Below are positions 30,089-49,363 of a stretch of 64,000 bases of DNA, piece by piece. Where the stretch lies: the NCBI GenBank assembly GCA_904063045.1, contig CAJFCJ010000001.1, positions 2,666,001 through 2,730,000 on the forward strand, in the 5' to 3' direction. Below the pieces are notes generated by a model, which saw only the letters and a list, made by a program, of their open reading frames with translations, was not told where the DNA came from and made no database searches. Position numbers and translations under genes: made by a program. Source of the DNA: Dimorphilus gyrociliatus. Lineage: Eukaryota; Animalia; Annelida. The first letter of the stretch is position 1. Each line of letters starts with the position of its first letter.

Positions 30089-31030
30089 GCTTTTTTAGCC
30101 AAAACTGGAATATTTCCGTAGCTTGAATACAAATAGTTCTTTGAAGAATCCCCAAAAGTTAAAAATCGTTGATACGTTGCAGATTTTCTGTCCAAAAAAT
30201 CCTTATGTATAGTTAATGATGTATTGGAATATCTTTTTTTAATAGATGATATTTCTTCCTCTGTAAGCTCCGTGGATTTTATTTTATTCATTAAACTGAT
30301 GTATATATTGGTATTATCACTCAATATCACTCTACACTACTTAATTTTTTCCTAATTTTGAACTACCTACGCTTTCTTTCTCTTTTTTTAACAAATAAAA
30401 TATATTTTATCCAATATCTTCTTAATCTCTGTGTTAATTACGTATTTGTAAGCGAATGGATAAGAATCAACGGGTTTCAGCTTGTTTCTAACGACGCCGA
30501 GCCTTCCGAAATAATCATGAAAAAATTCTGAAAATTCAGGCCGATGATTGGCTAATTTTCATTGATAAATTTGTTTACGTTTTTCAGTTAACTCTACACT
30601 CTAGCTGGTTGTTCACCTACCAATGATTACAAAATAGACAGTCAACTTAAATCTTTAATTTATGATAACTTAATTGCAGATTTTGAAAAGTAACTTAATT
30701 AATCAGACCTTTAAGATTGAATAAATTACATAACAAAGATGTCACTCTTGCTCTTGAACAATACAAACGATCCTTATTTAAATCCTGTTTGTATTATTTT
30801 TCGGTGTCATTCATATAGTCAATGAACTGACACAAATCTTATATTTTGCATTTTTGTTATTATGCAATAGATAATAAAATGTTCAGCTGAACAAAACATA
30901 TATATATATATATAAATCTTAAAAGACAAATATGAATGATGTTTAAAAAAAATCCATTACAACTTTTTACGCTTTCTGTTTTAGCATAAACTTTACGTGA
31001 TGAATTCTTTTTTATAATCTAGATAAGTCT

Positions 31031-43926: not shown

Positions 43927-46900
43927 ATGGCCTCGAAAGTTGTTGATGAAAATTTGATACTAAATTTTGGAGATCTGCCCTCAGAAGGCGAAGTCTTTAG
44001 GCAAAAAATTGTTTTTGTTGATGTTGGTTCTGATGAACACGAATGGCGAGAAGTATGCAAATTTATAGCTTCTTTAGGAGCCACGCTGATAAGTCGTGTT
44101 ACGGATTGTGTAGATTTTTGTGTGTTTAAAGATGGTAGTAAGACAACGTGGGATGCCTGTAGTAAATACAGCGTACCTCGAGTCAGAGTTACATATGTTA
44201 TGGAATGTAAAATGCTTAATTTTCTTGTTGATATGGACGATTTTCTTTCACCATCGCCTTATCAAGAAGAAGAAGCTGTTCAGGAAAAACTTCCTTCACC
44301 TGCTGTCAGGTACCGGTTTTCACCTACTAGGGCTTGTTCGCCTTTAAAAAGCGATGAAGAACTTGAAGAGTTAGACGTTGTAATGAGACGGCATATGGAA
44401 CGAAAGTCTTTACAAAATGTTCAAAAAAGTCTCTTAAATTTTGATGTTGCTTCAACACCCGAGCCAATTGCATGTTCATCAATAAGAAGAGATAACCCTA
44501 TGAAAAGTCGAGTAGACGATGATTTAACTCCTAGAGATGTTAAGGATAGCATGGATAAATCAGAGGAGGACTTGTTTAAAGACAGCGAAAATGAACATGA
44601 TGTTGAAACTACTTTAAATACAAGAAGAAATGCAAAGAAGTCATATAAAAAGTTTTTTAATGATAGTGACCTTAGAGGTGATAAGTCCGATGACAATGGA
44701 GTTGAAAATTCTGATAGTCCTTCCGAAAAAAAATTATGTAGTTGGCGAAATCGTGATAGAGAGATTGATTATTCAAAAAAAATATTTCCAAAAGTCGAAC
44801 AAAATAAAGACAGTTCTGATAAAGAAGCTGAGGACGAAGATGATGAACTGTCATCATTTATTAATCCTTTTGATGGAGACTTTGAAGATTCATTAGATGA
44901 TGATCCAAAAAGAAAAAGCTTTACCCATAGAAGAGTCGTTCGAATGCAGAATTCCCAGCTCTTGACTTCTTCGCCCATTTGTGATGAAGAGGAGCTGAGA
45001 ATTGAAAATCTGAGAAATTTAGGTAAATTGCGATGTGATAAAGTGAATGTTATAATTCCTAAGCAAAAATCTCAAAGACGTAAACGAGTCGTAAAAAAGT
45101 CTGAAACAAAGAAAGAAAAAGCCTCTAAAAAAAAAAGTGATGATTTATCTTCCAACAGAACAAAAATTAGAAAAAGAAAAGAAACACTATCTGGTCCTCC
45201 GAAGGAATATCGACGTATTTTAAATGCAAAGAAACATGACATGTCAATCTATGACTTTCCTAATACACAATCTTCCTCTCAACAAACAGAACAACTCGTA
45301 TTCAAGAAATCTTCAGATAATGACGAATGCCAGCCAAAAAATATTCCAAAAGAAAATAACACTTCAAATCCAAATTCGCCTGAAAGAGAAAATTCAGTGA
45401 AAGAGAGTGTACGCGATACTCCCGCATTAAAAACAACAAGCTCTGAAATAATTAATGAGGAAGAATCAGATACCGATTTTTTCCCAAGCCAATTAGCTGA
45501 ATCGATATCAATAAAGGATCATAGAAAATCCCGCAAAAATGGAACGCTTTGTGCCCCAGTGAAAACAGATTCTACTACATTCCTCTGCGAAACTTCAAAA
45601 AATATTAAAACAGAAGAAAACAATGATTCTTCAAGTGAAGACTTTTGGTCTTCCCAATTGTGTCGCAGCTTATCCTCTAATTCAGTTAAGAAGTCAAGAA
45701 GAAATGGAACATTGTGCTCTAATAATACTAAAACGGCAAAAAAAGCAAGAAAAAGTATTGAACAGGCATCTGCACTAGAAAAAATAGCAGCCGTGATAGC
45801 CGAAACTGATAATTTCCTTTACGAATCTTCTGAAAGGGAAAACAAACTAAAATCTAATAAGCCTAATACACGCAAACGGGCCTCTAATACTTTATTGACC
45901 TCCAAGTCACCAAAGTCAACGAGATGCGAAACTGTAAATTCTTTAAAAGAATCTATGCATAATGAACAAATTTTGAATGAGGCTATACAGCCAACAAAAG
46001 CGAAAACTTCACCAAATAATAAAAGTAAAAAGCAAACAGCACAGCAAAGACGTCGATCCAATCGTATTAAATCTTCTGCGGAAGAAATTTTATCTTCTGC
46101 GGACAATGAAAAGAATGAAGCAACACTTTTTAAAGTTCCTCTTGCTAAAAAATCTAATAAAGCTGCTAAATCATCAAAATTGCCAGTTCCGTGTTCACAC
46201 TCAGGAAATTCTTCTAATGACGAAAATTATAGTTCAGAAAATAACAAAATTTCAAGTTTTAAAACATCAAAAATAGCTGTGAGGCGATCAACTAGATCGG
46301 CAACATCTAATCGAACGTTAAACTCAGGTACTTCTACCAACAGTACGACTTCCGCAAGTTCATTAACTGTAAAAAAAGATAATGTAAGCAAAAATGAAAA
46401 TGTGAATTTGCCGCGAAAGACAAACGTAAAATCAAAAAAAGACGAAATCTGCTCTTCAGATGAAGGAATGGATTTTAAAAAGTCGAGCAAATTGAGTCAG
46501 GCAGACTCGCTAAATGTAAAATTGATAAAAAGAAGGAAGAGGCAAACAATTTCAACACCTCCATCTCATTCTTTGAAATATACCAAGAGAAATGTTGTAT
46601 TTAGCTCATGTAACTCGAAACAACAGCAACTCTTTGCTAAAGCCTTAGAAAGACTTGGAAAATTCACTTTGAAAAAAAGTTTAACTAGCAAAAATGATAT
46701 CTTGGTTTTAGGAAATAATAAAAGAACATTAAAAGTAATACAAGCAACAATATCAGGTTGCATGATAGTATCCTTTGATTGGATAGAAAAATCACTTTTA
46801 AATTGTAGTTGGTTGGACTTGGAGACATTTGAAACTAAAGAACTGTTTCAAACAGCCTCAAAAGTTAGATGTGGTATTTTTAAGCTGAATCTCCTATTTC

Positions 46901-47130
46901 AAAAAGTTGGTAAGATATTCATTGCTGATGATACACAACCTGATAAAGTTGAACTGGTTAAACTAATAAAATCATGCGGTGGATCTGTAACAGAAATTCG
47001 TAGCAATGCGAAAGTAATAATAGGAACAAAGAATACAAAAGGCAAATTAAATGGATTATCACCAACTTGGGCTATAGATTCTATTATGGCTAATAAACTA
47101 ATGGCTGTAGGTTCAGAATATATTTTGTAA
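43927..47130 (+). CDS. MCPH1: Microcephalin-like BRCT protein, intronless CDS
   Basis: 1067 aa. N-terminal BRCT (LGATLISRVTD..CVFKDGSKTTW), a long Ser/Lys-rich disordered middle and tandem C-terminal BRCTs (VVFSSC, RTLKVIQATISGCMIVSFDWI, LSPTWAIDSI). A 5'-UTR intron lies at about 43803-43865. Confidence 0.85.
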   Translation: MASKVVDENLILNFGDLPSEGEVFRQKIVFVDVGSDEHEWREVCKFIASLGATLISRVTDCVDFCVFKDGSKTTWDACSKYSVPRVRVTYVMECKMLNFLVDMDDFLSPSPYQEEEAVQEKLPSPAVRYRFSPTRACSPLKSDEELEELDVVMRRHMERKSLQNVQKSLLNFDVASTPEPIACSSIRRDNPMKSRVDDDLTPRDVKDSMDKSEEDLFKDSENEHDVETTLNTRRNAKKSYKKFFNDSDLRGDKSDDNGVENSDSPSEKKLCSWRNRDREIDYSKKIFPKVEQNKDSSDKEAEDEDDELSSFINPFDGDFEDSLDDDPKRKSFTHRRVVRMQNSQLLTSSPICDEEELRIENLRNLGKLRCDKVNVIIPKQKSQRRKRVVKKSETKKEKASKKKSDDLSSNRTKIRKRKETLSGPPKEYRRILNAKKHDMSIYDFPNTQSSSQQTEQLVFKKSSDNDECQPKNIPKENNTSNPNSPERENSVKESVRDTPALKTTSSEIINEEESDTDFFPSQLAESISIKDHRKSRKNGTLCAPVKTDSTTFLCETSKNIKTEENNDSSSEDFWSSQLCRSLSSNSVKKSRRNGTLCSNNTKTAKKARKSIEQASALEKIAAVIAETDNFLYESSERENKLKSNKPNTRKRASNTLLTSKSPKSTRCETVNSLKESMHNEQILNEAIQPTKAKTSPNNKSKKQTAQQRRRSNRIKSSAEEILSSADNEKNEATLFKVPLAKKSNKAAKSSKLPVPCSHSGNSSNDENYSSENNKISSFKTSKIAVRRSTRSATSNRTLNSGTSTNSTTSASSLTVKKDNVSKNENVNLPRKTNVKSKKDEICSSDEGMDFKKSSKLSQADSLNVKLIKRRKRQTISTPPSHSLKYTKRNVVFSSCNSKQQQLFAKALERLGKFTLKKSLTSKNDILVLGNNKRTLKVIQATISGCMIVSFDWIEKSLLNCSWLDLETFETKELFQTASKVRCGIFKLNLLFQKVGKIFIADDTQPDKVELVKLIKSCGGSVTEIRSNAKVIIGTKNTKGKLNGLSPTWAIDSIMANKLMAVGSEYIL

Positions 47131-47509
47131 GTGATTTTTACATGAGATTGAATATTTTTTGCTAAATTTAGTTGTGTTAGATGATAGATCTACATTTCGG
47201 TTCAACACTTTGAAGAGACTCGATATTAACTCAGAATTGACTTAAAATCAATTTTGTATCGAAATCTATATACTGTTGTATAAGTATGGTATAATTTTGT
47301 TATAGCTTTTTTCTATAAAGCCTTCTTCTATGTCTTCGAAATTCTGATATTTTATCTAAATTCGCTAAAGAGTCTAATTCAAGAAAGTTGACATTATATT
47401 ATTAAACTTTTGCAATAAAACGTTTTAAAGCAAGATTGAGATTGACAAAATTATGTTCAATCAATAGCTACTAAAGGTCATCTAAACTAACAAATTTAAC
47501 AAATACTTC

Positions 47510-48493
47510 TTATACTGCCTGGAGAGAATCGTAAGGTAAATTTCTTGAACGACAAGGAAAAAAGTATGTCCAGAAAGGTCCTGGTCCACAAACATCTGAT
47601 AGTGCGTTTGGTACCGTTTTTGTTGCTGGCAGAGAGCTCAGCGGGATGAATCCAGCAGCACCCATTTGCATTGTTTCGATTGTAGTTTTATCAGCTACTA
47701 CTAGGAGTATCTGCGAAATAAACAAAGCTAAACATGCACAGCCCATGAAGACTCCCATACACATCAGTACTGCTATGTAATAATTCTGATAGATATATAG
47801 GGAGTCATCGTCGTCGTAGACTTCTCTTTCAGGTAGGACGCAAAGGTGAAGAAAAGCAGTTAAGAAACTTGTTCCGCTTAACAAAACAGCATAAAATAAC
47901 AATTGAAGAAATGCAAACTGGGACATGATTCATATTAATAGCAATATTTTATGGATTCCCTTTTATTTTGTAAAGGCGAATAAATGATTTTACTTTATAT
48001 TTTCTAAAATTTATAAGTTAACTTATTTTGCTACGAGTTTCTTATATAAATCACGTCCCTGATTAGCTTCGCCAACGCAATTATTTATCCAAGGACAATG
48101 ATGATCCATTTTCAAAACGCATTGTTTACATCTTTTACAGTGATGTGCCCTATCGGGCCTTCTCTTCTGACATTTGTCGCAGTATGTCTTTGGTTGAGTC
48201 GGTACTTCAATTGAAATTGAGCTATGTTCAATAAGTTTACTCTCTGGTTCATAAAATTGAGAATCTGGTACTTTTCCTGGATTCGTCATTGTAGCTCTAA
48301 ATAAACTTAAAATGCAAAACAATGAAATAGTACAAAACATTGCGATTGATAGTAAGGAGACATGGTTCTCCTTATAGTGAGGAATTAAAATAACAAATAA
48401 AGTACTCCAAGAGCCGTAGATCCAATATGCTATAATAAAGCTCATATGTAGTAACCCCTGAAGATCGCAATTAAATTTAATATTCCTAATCAT
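47510..48493 (-). CDS. ZDHHC21: DHHC palmitoyltransferase ZDHHC21-like
   Basis: [57 protein letters not shown], then FAFLQLLFY and a TTIE motif. Two coding exons are separated by an unusual intron (about 47918-48058). Confidence 0.85.
47921..48058. mobile_element. MITE-like element forming the ZDHHC21 intron (Introner-like)
   Basis: Terminal inverted repeats GGACATGATTCATATTA / GGACGTGATTTATATAA (14/17 match). Flanked by a direct CTG (CAG on the gene strand) at 47918-47920 and 48059-48061. AT-rich interior with an in-frame stop. Confidence 0.65.
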
Positions 48494-49363
48494 GATTAGT
48501 TGTAAAGATGAAATTGTATCTAAATTTTACGCAAATCTCGATGGTTACGATTGTTGATTCTAATCGAAAGCCGCTTAAACTGGTATTCTTTTCCTAAATG
48601 TCTTGGTGAAAGATTCAAAAACTTTTCAATTCGTTGTTCCTTCACTGCGATTATTTTGGAGGTGGAACACTATACCTAGCAGTCAACGTGACAATAATCA
48701 TTGTATGTTATCGAAGTAAACATATGCAGGTCGATTCGATAAATACACTGTTTTTTATTTTATAAAGTTACAGCTCATGAAAAAAAGCATTATAAAAGTG
48801 ATTATGAATAGTGATAAACTTTATTATAGTTGATAAATTAATTATGCTAGTAAAACTTAGATCTGGACGCTTATTTGAGACATTGACATTTAAATATTTT
48901 TGTTAAACGGTTAACAGTAATATTTGAAAAATAACAAAATAGTTAATCCTTATGTAACTATGAAGAGATCAATACACGAATGCCAGTTGTCACGGGCAAA
49001 CGACAATCGATCAGTTTTTTGAAAATTCGAAATATGTTACCCTTGAAAAAATACAAATTGACAAGTTATTGGAAAAGTAAAACGGGAATATTTATAATAA
49101 AAGCAGGCTATAAATATCAGATAATGCAAAAATTTATATTCGGGGAGGGGAGCAAAGGTTATTTCTAAAACGATTTCGATTCGATATATCTACAAGCAAT
49201 ATCGGTATTATCGATTTAATAGAACATTCAAATATAGCGTTTGGAAAGTATATTTGGCTTTTTATGTTCGACTGTGAAAAGGATCACAGAAGTAGCGGTG
49301 TTCACTGTGTTCAGCAGTGATAAAACATTGTTTATCGTCTGCTGAGCGATTCTATATGAGGCA

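Follow-up and report, generated by a model that had tools for sequence, protein, structure and literature searches.

The ZDHHC21 locus and its insert

A stretch of 64,000 nt from the tiny marine annelid Dimorphilus gyrociliatus (contig CAJFCJ010000001.1, positions 2,666,001 to 2,730,000; hereafter the window, whose own numbering is used throughout) carries on its reverse strand a ZDHHC21 palmitoyltransferase gene whose two coding exons are separated by an insert of 141 nt. Exon 1 (48493-48059) begins with an ATG at 48493, comprises 145 codons ending in AAT CAG, encodes the DHHC-CRD up to the peptide VGEANQ, and is covered without a gap by an RNA-derived contig over 48059-48570. Exon 2 (47917-47510) starts with TTT GCA and comprises 135 codons followed by a stop codon at 47510-47512, with an RNA contig spanning 47507-47920. 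Positions 3-48 of the Pfam DHHC model (PF01529) are matched by exon 1 (E 1.6e-20) and positions 50-131 by exon 2, so that removal of the 141 nt restores the domain. A preliminary description of this locus, made from the sequence alone, had assigned the gene to ZDHHC21, and this assignment is borne out by both the DHHC-CRD domain and the closest named proteins, which are ZDHHC21 or ZDHHC21-like (the best of them, at 39-42% identity, from coelacanth, nemerteans, molluscs, and a brachiopod). The residue spacing that it had given for ZDHHC21 is likewise correct, Latimeria ZDHHC21 reading VGEDNHWLFLQL. A metagenome scan for closer relatives of the protein gave a top identity of ≤36%, and an exact database look-up of the 156-aa read-through open reading frame (ORF) returned no record. 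A protein encoded near ZDHHC21 is 100% identical to DgyrCDS699, located on the same 3.6-Mb contig.

The insert occupies 48058-47918 on the reverse strand, in phase 0, and is composed as previously described of a 138-nt element (48058-47921) followed by CAG (47920-47918). It opens with GGACGTG and closes with CATGTCCCAG. The trinucleotide CAG forms a direct repeat around the element, of which the upstream, exonic copy (48061-48059) fills 5' splice-site positions -3 to -1, and the downstream, intronic copy (47920-47918) constitutes the 3' splice site, as judged from the sequence and the RNA joint. The in-frame TAA reported inside the insert is present at 48025-48023 and terminates the ORF that runs from 48493 to 48023, such that retention of the insert leads to a truncated protein.

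Removal of the insert from RNA

The insert is an intron, and its precise removal from RNA is confirmed. A contig from run X1, which was judged to be RNA on the basis of GT..AG joints in nearby genes and of a transcript end that carries an Illumina adapter, joins 47917 to 48059 and skips exactly 141 nt whose ends read CT..CC on the forward strand. The RNA-derived contigs thereby match the predicted excision, in which GG..AG borders enclose exactly 141 nt, within the 3-nt ambiguity imposed by the CAG repeat: the cut may shift by as much as 3 nt (both=3), giving GG..AG, GG..CA, AG..CC, or CA..CC. The borders are best read as CAG/GG...CAG/ (slashes mark exon-intron borders), with GG as the donor and AG as the acceptor, since this is the only option that combines a normal acceptor with a donor context close to the CAG/GURAGU consensus. 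The donor fits this consensus at seven of nine positions both here and in the related lineage described below, the exceptions being G at +2 and C at +4, and a pyrimidine tract is absent from the intron. No joint at the alternative GT donor (48034) was reported among the RNA-derived contigs. As previously described, this is the sole coding intron of the gene, the RNA contigs being continuous across both exons.

Unspliced RNA is also present, at the same order as spliced RNA, as indicated by RNA contigs that break at both intron borders (with ends at 47920 and 48059) and by other contigs that cover the intron. A rough estimate from binned depth places unspliced against spliced RNA at about 137 against 152, contigs being a poor gauge of level. 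RNA contigs cross five nearby GT-AG junctions unbroken, and run X1 has a very low depth (6.7) over intergenic DNA.

The coding sequence argues independently that the intron is removed. Exon 2 is open and conserved at 101 of 136 amino acids (74%) relative to the related lineage while third codon positions are 45% identical, which indicates that it is translated in genomes that bear the insert and that removal is consequently required. In a third lineage, an uninterrupted 280-aa ORF reading VGEANQ-FAFLQL lies on a 908-nt, transcript-sized contig, although this contig may instead be genomic, from a copy of the gene without the intron through loss.

Pairing of the intron ends and its persistence in a relative

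The first 15-17 bases of the intron can pair with the 15-17 bases that directly precede its closing CAG to form a terminal helix of 15-17 bp. Its 5' arm (48058-48042, intron positions 1-17) holds the 5' splice site GGACGU, and its 3' arm (47937-47921, intron positions 122-138) occupies the interval between the candidate branch site and the CAG, the usual place of a polypyrimidine tract. The inverted termini had been put at 14 of 17 positions, a count that holds for Watson-Crick pairs and rises to 16 of 17 when G.U pairs on the sense strand are included. The terminal helix opens into a large multiloop, and an inner 7-bp helix, found in both the minimum free energy (MFE) and the centroid structure, pairs 48034-48028 with 47938-47944; its 5' half includes the alternative GT donor that the preliminary description had weighed. 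From sequence only, we infer a candidate branch-site region in an 11-nt block that adjoins the 3' arm upstream (47947-47937) and is identical at 10 of 11 positions in the relative, with a candidate branch A at 47939, placed 21 nt ahead of the last intron base in both lineages. By pairing as it does, the helix encloses the donor (+1 to +15) together with the interval from the candidate branch site to the acceptor, on its face a hindrance to U1 and U2AF binding and a point against a helping role for the helix.

Taken at the borders that RNA defines, the terminal duplex has a predicted energy of -20.2 kcal/mol; shuffled arms give -6.7 ± 2.4 kcal/mol, and none of 500 were as good. The whole intron folds on the sense strand at -30.9 kcal/mol (z = -5.9; equalled by none of 200 shuffles), and the antisense fold has a z of -1.8. 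The helix survives the addition of 40 nt of exon on each side in both lineages, and in folds with the exon flanks the G of the exonic CAG is able to pair with the C of the intronic CAG. In five RNA-supported GT-AG introns nearby, taken as controls, the energy of the terminal duplex ranges from +0.6 to -5.6 kcal/mol, in each case within the range of the intron's own shuffles. When the 64-kb window was scanned for helices of similar size in a G..AG context, the ZDHHC21 intron was the sole match; shuffled windows yield one to six matches in the same scan, so the inverted repeat by itself is unremarkable, and the helix gains its weight because the arms sit exactly on borders that are set independently by RNA and by the reading frame. 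Exact runs within the arms measure 4-5 nt, below the 6-nt and 7-nt seeds of the repeat and stem scans, and stem counts over the whole window with 7-nt exact seeds are at the shuffled level. A relaxed scan of the window and of the relative's sequence L003 for further clamped introns between open frames returned, besides this intron and its ortholog, only chance matches within ORFs, and neither the window nor the intron matched an Rfam family.

The intron position is common to one dinophilid relative (L001/L003), which shares the gene order, including a BRCT gene, and has an intron of 155 nt at the same ZDHHC21 codon with the same layout, CAG/GG...CC-CAG/. Synonymous sites are near saturation between D. 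gyrociliatus and this relative, so the shared intron is old, which excludes a recent insertion. In line with the preliminary description, no ancestral intron occupies this position: the orthologs of the mollusc Lottia and the brachiopod Lingula contain six to seven introns, the nearest at CPW/INNC, 10 codons upstream, and have none at this site, so that the intron is a lineage-specific gain.

The terminal helix of the relative is perfect, with 14 of 14 Watson-Crick pairs. Between the two lineages, the 5' arm is identical at 16 of 18 positions and the intron interior is only 54% identical and unalignable. Two pairs have changed on both arms (C-G to U-A and G-C to A-U) and two on one arm by way of G.U; 94% of helix cells are paired across the lineages, against 26-53% when the partners are slid. 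These matched arm changes, set beside the drifted interior, make the pairing look selected at the RNA level, and, as far as a comparison of sequences can tell, such selection looks to have kept it since before the split from the relative. A formal covariation shuffle gave 131/500, a weak result given that just two sequences are compared.

A proposed helix-clamped mode of splicing, its alternatives and known systems

The ZDHHC21 intron is probably a lineage-specific, helix-clamped GG-AG intron that arose by insertion, whose pairing has been kept by selection, and whose removal by the spliceosome is aided by the helix. In this model, the major spliceosome would remove the intron, as its U1-like donor context suggests, and the terminal helix would offset weak signals (no GT and no pyrimidine tract) by holding the donor, branch region, and acceptor together, while setting the two exon ends side by side. 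The intron may have originated as a short element with inverted ends that inserted in the common ancestor of the two lineages, presumably after all ancestral introns had been lost from ZDHHC21.

A helix of this kind could instead restrain splicing, making this a conserved 'detained' intron whose retained transcripts meet the TAA and thereby tune ZDHHC21 output. The enclosure of the donor and of the branch-to-acceptor stretch within the helix, as well as the coexistence of spliced and unspliced paths in RNA contigs that leave the five nearby GT-AG junctions unbroken, is what such a role would lead one to expect. Contig depths are no measure of retention, however, and a weak GG donor combined with an inhibitory helix should abolish splicing, yet the gene is intact in at least two lineages; we therefore regard this explanation as unlikely.

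The preliminary description had read the inverted termini, the flanking 3-nt direct repeat, and the AT-rich 138-nt element as the mark of an intron-generating MITE family, possibly PIF/Harbinger or CACTA, with CAG as the target site duplication (TSD). Recent insertion by such an Introner family, active now or until recently, would agree with these features and with the intron-free site in distant orthologs. What stands of this reading is the intron, its inverted termini, and its new position. CAG is the ordinary consensus for both exon ends and intron ends. The CAG is indeed found on both sides in both lineages, but it equals what the splice consensus would give anyway and is thus not independent evidence of transposition. 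The termini occur as a single copy in the 64-kb window, as had been noted, and no second copy of either the element or its termini is present there or in 20 kb of the relative, which leaves a transposon origin without direct support and the proposed family unsubstantiated. A candidate second copy at 30803-30943 (141 nt, with a 3' arm alike at 12 of 13 positions) was rejected, having 10 Watson-Crick pairs, no interior similarity, and a pattern count at chance level. Recent insertion is further opposed by the same-codon intron in a near-saturated lineage, which makes the insertion ancient, by the matched arm changes, which are not expected of a dead transposon end, and by the D. gyrociliatus genome paper, which reports only MITEs that match Mariner. 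We consider recent insertion improbable; a transposon origin in the common ancestor is plausible but unproven.

It is about as improbable that the helix has no role in RNA, the spliceosome simply tolerating G at +2 and the arms persisting through DNA homogenisation or by chance. Such tolerance would be in keeping with the near-consensus donor of both lineages, with the GA/GG donors that are common in the copepod Eurytemora affinis, where hairpins are not reported (PMC5714493), and with the GV/AG introns that form a recognised class in larvaceans (PMC13326754). Chance or homogenisation fits poorly, however, with helix positions that remain almost all paired around an interior that has diverged so far, with a sense fold far better than the antisense fold, and with the two mismatches produced by transitions, both of which are G.U on the sense strand (A.C on the antisense).

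Very little probability attaches to a DNA-level explanation, according to which the form that lacks the 141 nt is DNA without the insert, whether a presence/absence allele in the culture or the product of precise somatic excision. Removal of the element and one CAG would leave an exact 'empty site', and the spliced and unspliced forms are seemingly similar in abundance in the one run, but the insert is fixed in a deeply diverged lineage, so that an allele without it could only have arisen by a fresh, exact deletion; purifying selection acts on exon 2 in the insert-bearing genomes, and the same run shows ordinary GT-AG splicing elsewhere and has very little intergenic depth. Scarcely credible is a role for the excised intron as a functional small-RNA precursor (mirtron-like) or other non-coding RNA, as the helix, although it starts with the first intron base and has a short 3' overhang like that of mirtrons, spans only 15-17 bp before the multiloop, against about 22 bp or more in a mirtron hairpin, has changed between the lineages at positions 4 and 7, within the would-be seed, and has no Rfam match.

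The proposed helix-clamped splicing of the ZDHHC21 intron has partial counterparts elsewhere. In the larvacean tunicate Fritillaria borealis, 95% of introns are non-canonical, mostly AG/AC and AG/AT, and U2AF subunits are duplicated (Henriet et al., 2019, as summarised in PMC11282704 and PMC13326754). The MITE-derived introns of this larvacean share with the ZDHHC21 intron inverted ends, species- or lineage-specific positions, non-GT borders, and precise removal, as well as a 3-nt repeat placed just upstream of the donor and in the last three intron bases (YAY in F. borealis, CAG here). The ZDHHC21 intron differs in that it occurs in an annelid, has GG-AG borders, lies among ordinary GT-AG neighbors, and appears to have kept its pairing over the long term through matched changes. 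Introner elements of the protist Amoebophrya, a dinoflagellate parasite, have inverted repeats of 8-20 nt, direct repeats of 3-5 nt over the borders, and a predicted hairpin that joins the exon ends, and the majority of them cannot be assigned to MITE families (PMC7789003). The ZDHHC21 intron fits this hairpin-bounded format with its 15-17 bp helix, 3-nt CAG repeat, and GG donor, although Amoebophrya has more than 60% non-canonical introns with very variable borders and repeated elements (PMC7789003), whereas a single copy was found here. In the nonconventional introns of Euglena, which are suspected to derive from MITEs, pairing of the ends has been shown experimentally to be needed for removal, and the cut is blurred by repeats (PMC12501133). 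End-to-end pairing and an ambiguous cut caused by short direct repeats are common to both. The Euglena code calls for CAG at +3, CTG at -8, and fixed spacers (PMC12501133), and the ZDHHC21 intron does not carry these motifs at the required offsets; its donor context is close to the U1-type consensus, and its acceptor is AG. Like the introners of algae and other aquatic eukaryotes, the intron lies at a new position, is bounded by inverted ends, and draws splice-site bases from a short direct repeat, but introners have many near-identical copies and mostly canonical borders (PMC9860276), and no second copy was found here. The survey of Gozashti et al. (2022) reports introners in just two animal groups and leaves annelids unmentioned (PMC9860276), and our literature search found no published description of hairpin-clamped GG-AG introns in annelids.

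More tentatively, dinophilids may possess a class of introns defined by a conserved terminal RNA helix and not by GT and a pyrimidine tract. If so, a structure-based splicing code would operate in a bilaterian with an otherwise ordinary spliceosome, and removal would depend on the helix. The class, which may descend from ancient inverted-repeat insertions with co-opted ends, would then count the ZDHHC21 intron as a clean and deeply conserved case. Descriptions of inverted-repeat, non-GT introns come from dinoflagellates, euglenids, and one tunicate lineage, all with intron sets that are unusual almost throughout, and there cause is hard to tell from consequence. Here, a lone intron of this type lies amid normal GT-AG introns in a culturable animal with a 74-Mb genome that has been presented as 'conservative', and a second lineage is at hand in which end pairing looks to have been kept by matched changes as the sequence between the ends drifted. 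The lone intron and the second lineage make it directly testable whether an RNA helix can replace canonical splice signals in an animal, and whether old transposon ends turn into such helices.

The GA/GG donors of E. affinis (PMC5714493) and the GV/AG introns of larvaceans (PMC13326754) are, like the ZDHHC21 intron, animal cases in which a donor that lacks T goes with an ordinary AG acceptor, although the copepod paper mentions no terminal pairing (PMC5714493). Gene models fail where annotators overlook such donors. The annotation pipeline did not take the GG donor of D. gyrociliatus ZDHHC21, which left the public gene model (GCA_904063045.1) as a stub of 88 aa, and genes carrying such introns are likely mis-annotated throughout the D. 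gyrociliatus genome.

Interruption of ZDHHC21 and removal of the insert

The ZDHHC21 reading frame opens at 48493 on the minus strand and crosses the DHHC cysteine-rich domain to VGEANQ, coded up to 48059; unspliced, it reads on past VGEANQ into the insert and stops at a TAA at 48025-48023. A second open frame on the same strand runs from 47917 (FAFLQL...) to a stop codon at 47512-47510. The Pfam DHHC profile is divided over these two pieces, with positions 3-48 in exon 1 (E 1.6e-20) and 50-131 in exon 2, so that the intervening 141 nt (48058-47918) interrupt a single domain. Homology was searched with each exon separately and with a natural protein, P0242, as full-length query. The best named matches to exon 1 were ZDHHC21 proteins (Latimeria, 42% identity), and P0242 matched ZDHHC21-like proteins of nemerteans, molluscs, and one brachiopod at ~39% identity. 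The locus lies in record CAJFCJ010000001.1 of GCA_904063045.1, where the gene call is an 88-aa stub that begins at an internal Met and terminates at the TAA within the intron (L086 1501-1767) and exon 2 (to 47510) is without a gene call, an annotation failure probably caused by the GG donor. The receptor kinase at 1158-2708 is 100% identical to Dimorphilus gyrociliatus DgyrCDS699. This 843-aa model (1155-2708 and beyond the window start) joins an Ig and tyrosine-kinase exon to FAD/NAD-binding oxidoreductase domains (PF00175, PF08030, PF00970), and looks like two neighbouring genes merged in one.

On the minus strand, the insert opens with GGACGTGATT and closes with AATCATGTCC before a final CAG, a triplet that also forms the last three bases of exon 1. 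Its two 17-base arms, the first 17 bases and the last 17 before the 3' CAG, are complementary at 14 positions, or 16 when sense-strand G.U pairs are counted, and on re-reading every sequence statement made about the insert in the preliminary description holds.

Only one public run, X1 (2017, in the form of contigs), covers the stretch, and it behaves as RNA, given GT..AG joints at five neighbouring introns, an Illumina adapter that ends one contig at 48570, and very low depth in intergenic DNA. One X1 contig joins 47917 to 48059, skipping exactly 141 nt with plus-strand ends CT..CC (GG..AG on the gene strand). The predicted GG-AG removal is thus found in an RNA-derived contig, at a cut that the CAG repeat leaves ambiguous by three letters, while no joint at the alternative GT donor (48034) is listed among the X1 contigs. 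The contigs are otherwise unbroken over exon 1 (48059-48570) and exon 2 (47507-47920), from which it follows, as had been proposed, that the insert is the only coding intron of the gene.

In X1 contigs 47507 is also linked directly to 46366, and the 1140 nt between them (46367-47506) are missing, with minus-strand ends GT..AG. The missing stretch looks like a 3'-UTR intron of ZDHHC21: the donor lies 3 nt past the stop codon, and the acceptor falls, in antisense, within coding sequence of the convergent BRCT gene. Almost all of the 1067-aa product of that gene (43927-47130, plus strand; L003 11209-14439), which carries two BRCT domains at its C-terminus, is encoded in a single exon, and the RNA has a 54-nt GT-AG intron at 47127-47180.

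Pairing of the intron ends and its conservation

A strict scan of the window (15 positions with at least 14 paired, a G start, and AG 2-5 nt past the 3' arm) returned the ZDHHC21 intron as its sole match. Shuffled windows gave 1-6 such sites each under the same scan, and the inverted repeat alone therefore proves little. At the borders fixed by RNA and reading frame, the terminal duplex reaches -20.2 kcal/mol against -6.7 +/- 2.4 in shuffled arms (0/500 as good), and terminal pairing at these independently set borders is strongly supported as exceeding chance. Folding of the sense strand gives -30.9 kcal/mol (z -5.9; 0/200 shuffles as good), with a 15-bp terminal helix in MFE and centroid structures alike, whereas the antisense fold reaches a z of only -1.8, since on the sense strand two of the three mismatches between the arms are G.U pairs. 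The helix remains with 40 nt of exon added per side, and the C of the 3' CAG then also pairs with the G that ends exon 1. In five nearby RNA-supported GT-AG introns, taken as controls, terminal duplex energies lay between +0.6 and -5.6 kcal/mol, each within the range of its own shuffles.

The comparison with a divergent relative (lineage B) bears on the age of this pairing. Exon 1 has 69% identity to the Logan protein P0001 (161 aa), in which VGEANQ is likewise followed by unrelated residues. The lineage B contigs, L001 and L003 (a 20-kb piece of a 50.8-kb contig), retain the BRCT neighbour in the same convergent order, so the loci are orthologous. The lineage B intron occupies the identical codon and phase and measures 155 nt, with the layout CAG/GG...CC-CAG/ of D. 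gyrociliatus (lineage A). Between the two genes, amino-acid identity is 71-74%, and third positions of identical codons are 45-55% identical, near saturation. The intron interiors are 54% identical in global alignment, which is noise at this base composition, and BLAST between the introns gives an E of only 0.001. The lineage B helix is a perfect 14 bp, and its 5' arm is 16/18 identical to that of D. gyrociliatus. Four pairs differ: position 4 is C-G in D. gyrociliatus and U-A in lineage B, position 7 is G-C and A-U, respectively, and positions 5 and 11 are G.U and U.G in D. gyrociliatus and Watson-Crick in lineage B. Over both lineages 94% of helix cells are paired, against 26-53% when partners are slid by 1-3 columns; a within-column shuffle (131/500) is uninformative with two sequences only. 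Arms that stay complementary through matched changes beside a saturated interior are evidence for long-term selection on terminal pairing, and the helix would accordingly be deeply conserved. A third lineage, C, about as distant from B at third codon positions as B is from A, is represented by a contig of 908 nt whose ORF runs without interruption for 280 aa and reads VGEANQ-FAFLQL; this contig may be either spliced mRNA or an intron-free gene.

Splicing of a weakly marked intron

The donor context, CAG/GGACGU in D. gyrociliatus and CAG/GGAUGU in lineage B, agrees with the U1 consensus CAG/GURAGU at 7/9 positions, and the acceptor is CAG. Immediately before the 3' arm lies an 11-nt block that is conserved at 10/11 positions between lineages A and B; in each of them it places a candidate adenine 21 nt from the 3' end. 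The ZDHHC21 intron has no pyrimidine tract, the 3' helix arm filling that space. The best reading is a major-spliceosome intron, removed despite weak signals, in which the helix would hold the intron ends together and so stand in for the missing ones.

A rival that stays alive is that the helix restrains splicing and the intron is detained. Both the donor and the stretch from branch site to acceptor lie inside the helix, which should compete with U1 and U2AF, and X1 carries signs of unspliced RNA. Exon contigs end exactly at both intron borders and intron bins carry depth, so that spliced and unspliced paths are both present, whereas contigs pass unbroken through five nearby GT-AG junctions. 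Binned depths give estimates of ~137 unspliced vs ~152 spliced, though contigs gauge level poorly, and incomplete splicing is only hinted at. At 48071-48121, four X1 contigs match the DHHC-motif core alone, at 90-95%, and are unrelated beyond it; they probably come from transcripts of DHHC paralogues and inflate depth in that bin. It is less likely that the form lacking the 141 nt, found in a run that behaves as RNA, reflects absence at the DNA level, or that the helix, with its matched changes, is a neutral relic; a mirtron is likewise less likely.

Origin and comparison with known introns

Lottia and Lingula ZDHHC21 proteins, mapped onto their own genes, have 6-7 introns, the nearest following CPW, 10 codons upstream of the D. 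gyrociliatus site, and none after GEAN(H/Q). The dinophilid gene has thus lost all ancestral introns and holds one at a new position. Comparison with orthologs, which the preliminary description had proposed, therefore places the intron as not ancestral and common to lineage B, and its gain predates the A/B split.

The intron's inverted ends, brief direct repeat, short length, and AT-rich interior fit the remains of a non-autonomous DNA transposon, which would be the simplest source of a ready-made helix, although nothing proves it. The intron-generating MITE family that had been suggested is not supported as stated: no further copy of the termini or interior occurs in the window or in L003, and the CAG repeat equally represents the consensus exon end and intron end. 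The deeply conserved helix is the more interesting fact. A 141-nt stretch at 30803-30943 (plus strand) has a 10-bp perfect inverted repeat (14 with G.U) and a 3' arm 12/13 identical to that of the ZDHHC21 intron; it was rejected as a second copy, since its interior is dissimilar and the pattern occurs no more often than chance allows. In the D. gyrociliatus genome paper the only MITEs reported match Mariner, and non-canonical splicing is nowhere mentioned; a large survey of introners detected them in just two animal groups and makes no mention of annelids.

Several known systems share features with this intron. Amoebophrya introner elements have 8-20-nt inverted repeats, 3-5-nt direct repeats across the borders, and non-canonical termini (PMC7789003), all in common with it. 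In Fritillaria borealis, MITE-derived introns carry a 3-nt repeat placed as here, with one copy preceding the donor and the other at the very end of the intron (PMC11282704; PMC13326754). Euglena nonconventional introns share the end pairing, which experiments there showed to be required (PMC12501133), and GG and GA donors as such occur in the copepod Eurytemora affinis (PMC5714493) and the larvacean GV/AG class (PMC13326754). The ZDHHC21 intron differs in its phylum, normal GT-AG neighbours, GG-AG borders, lack of a detectable family, and evidence of long-term selection on pairing. No description of such introns in D. gyrociliatus or any annelid was found in the literature, and the ZDHHC21 intron is a hairpin-bounded non-canonical intron, the first annelid case in the searchable literature.
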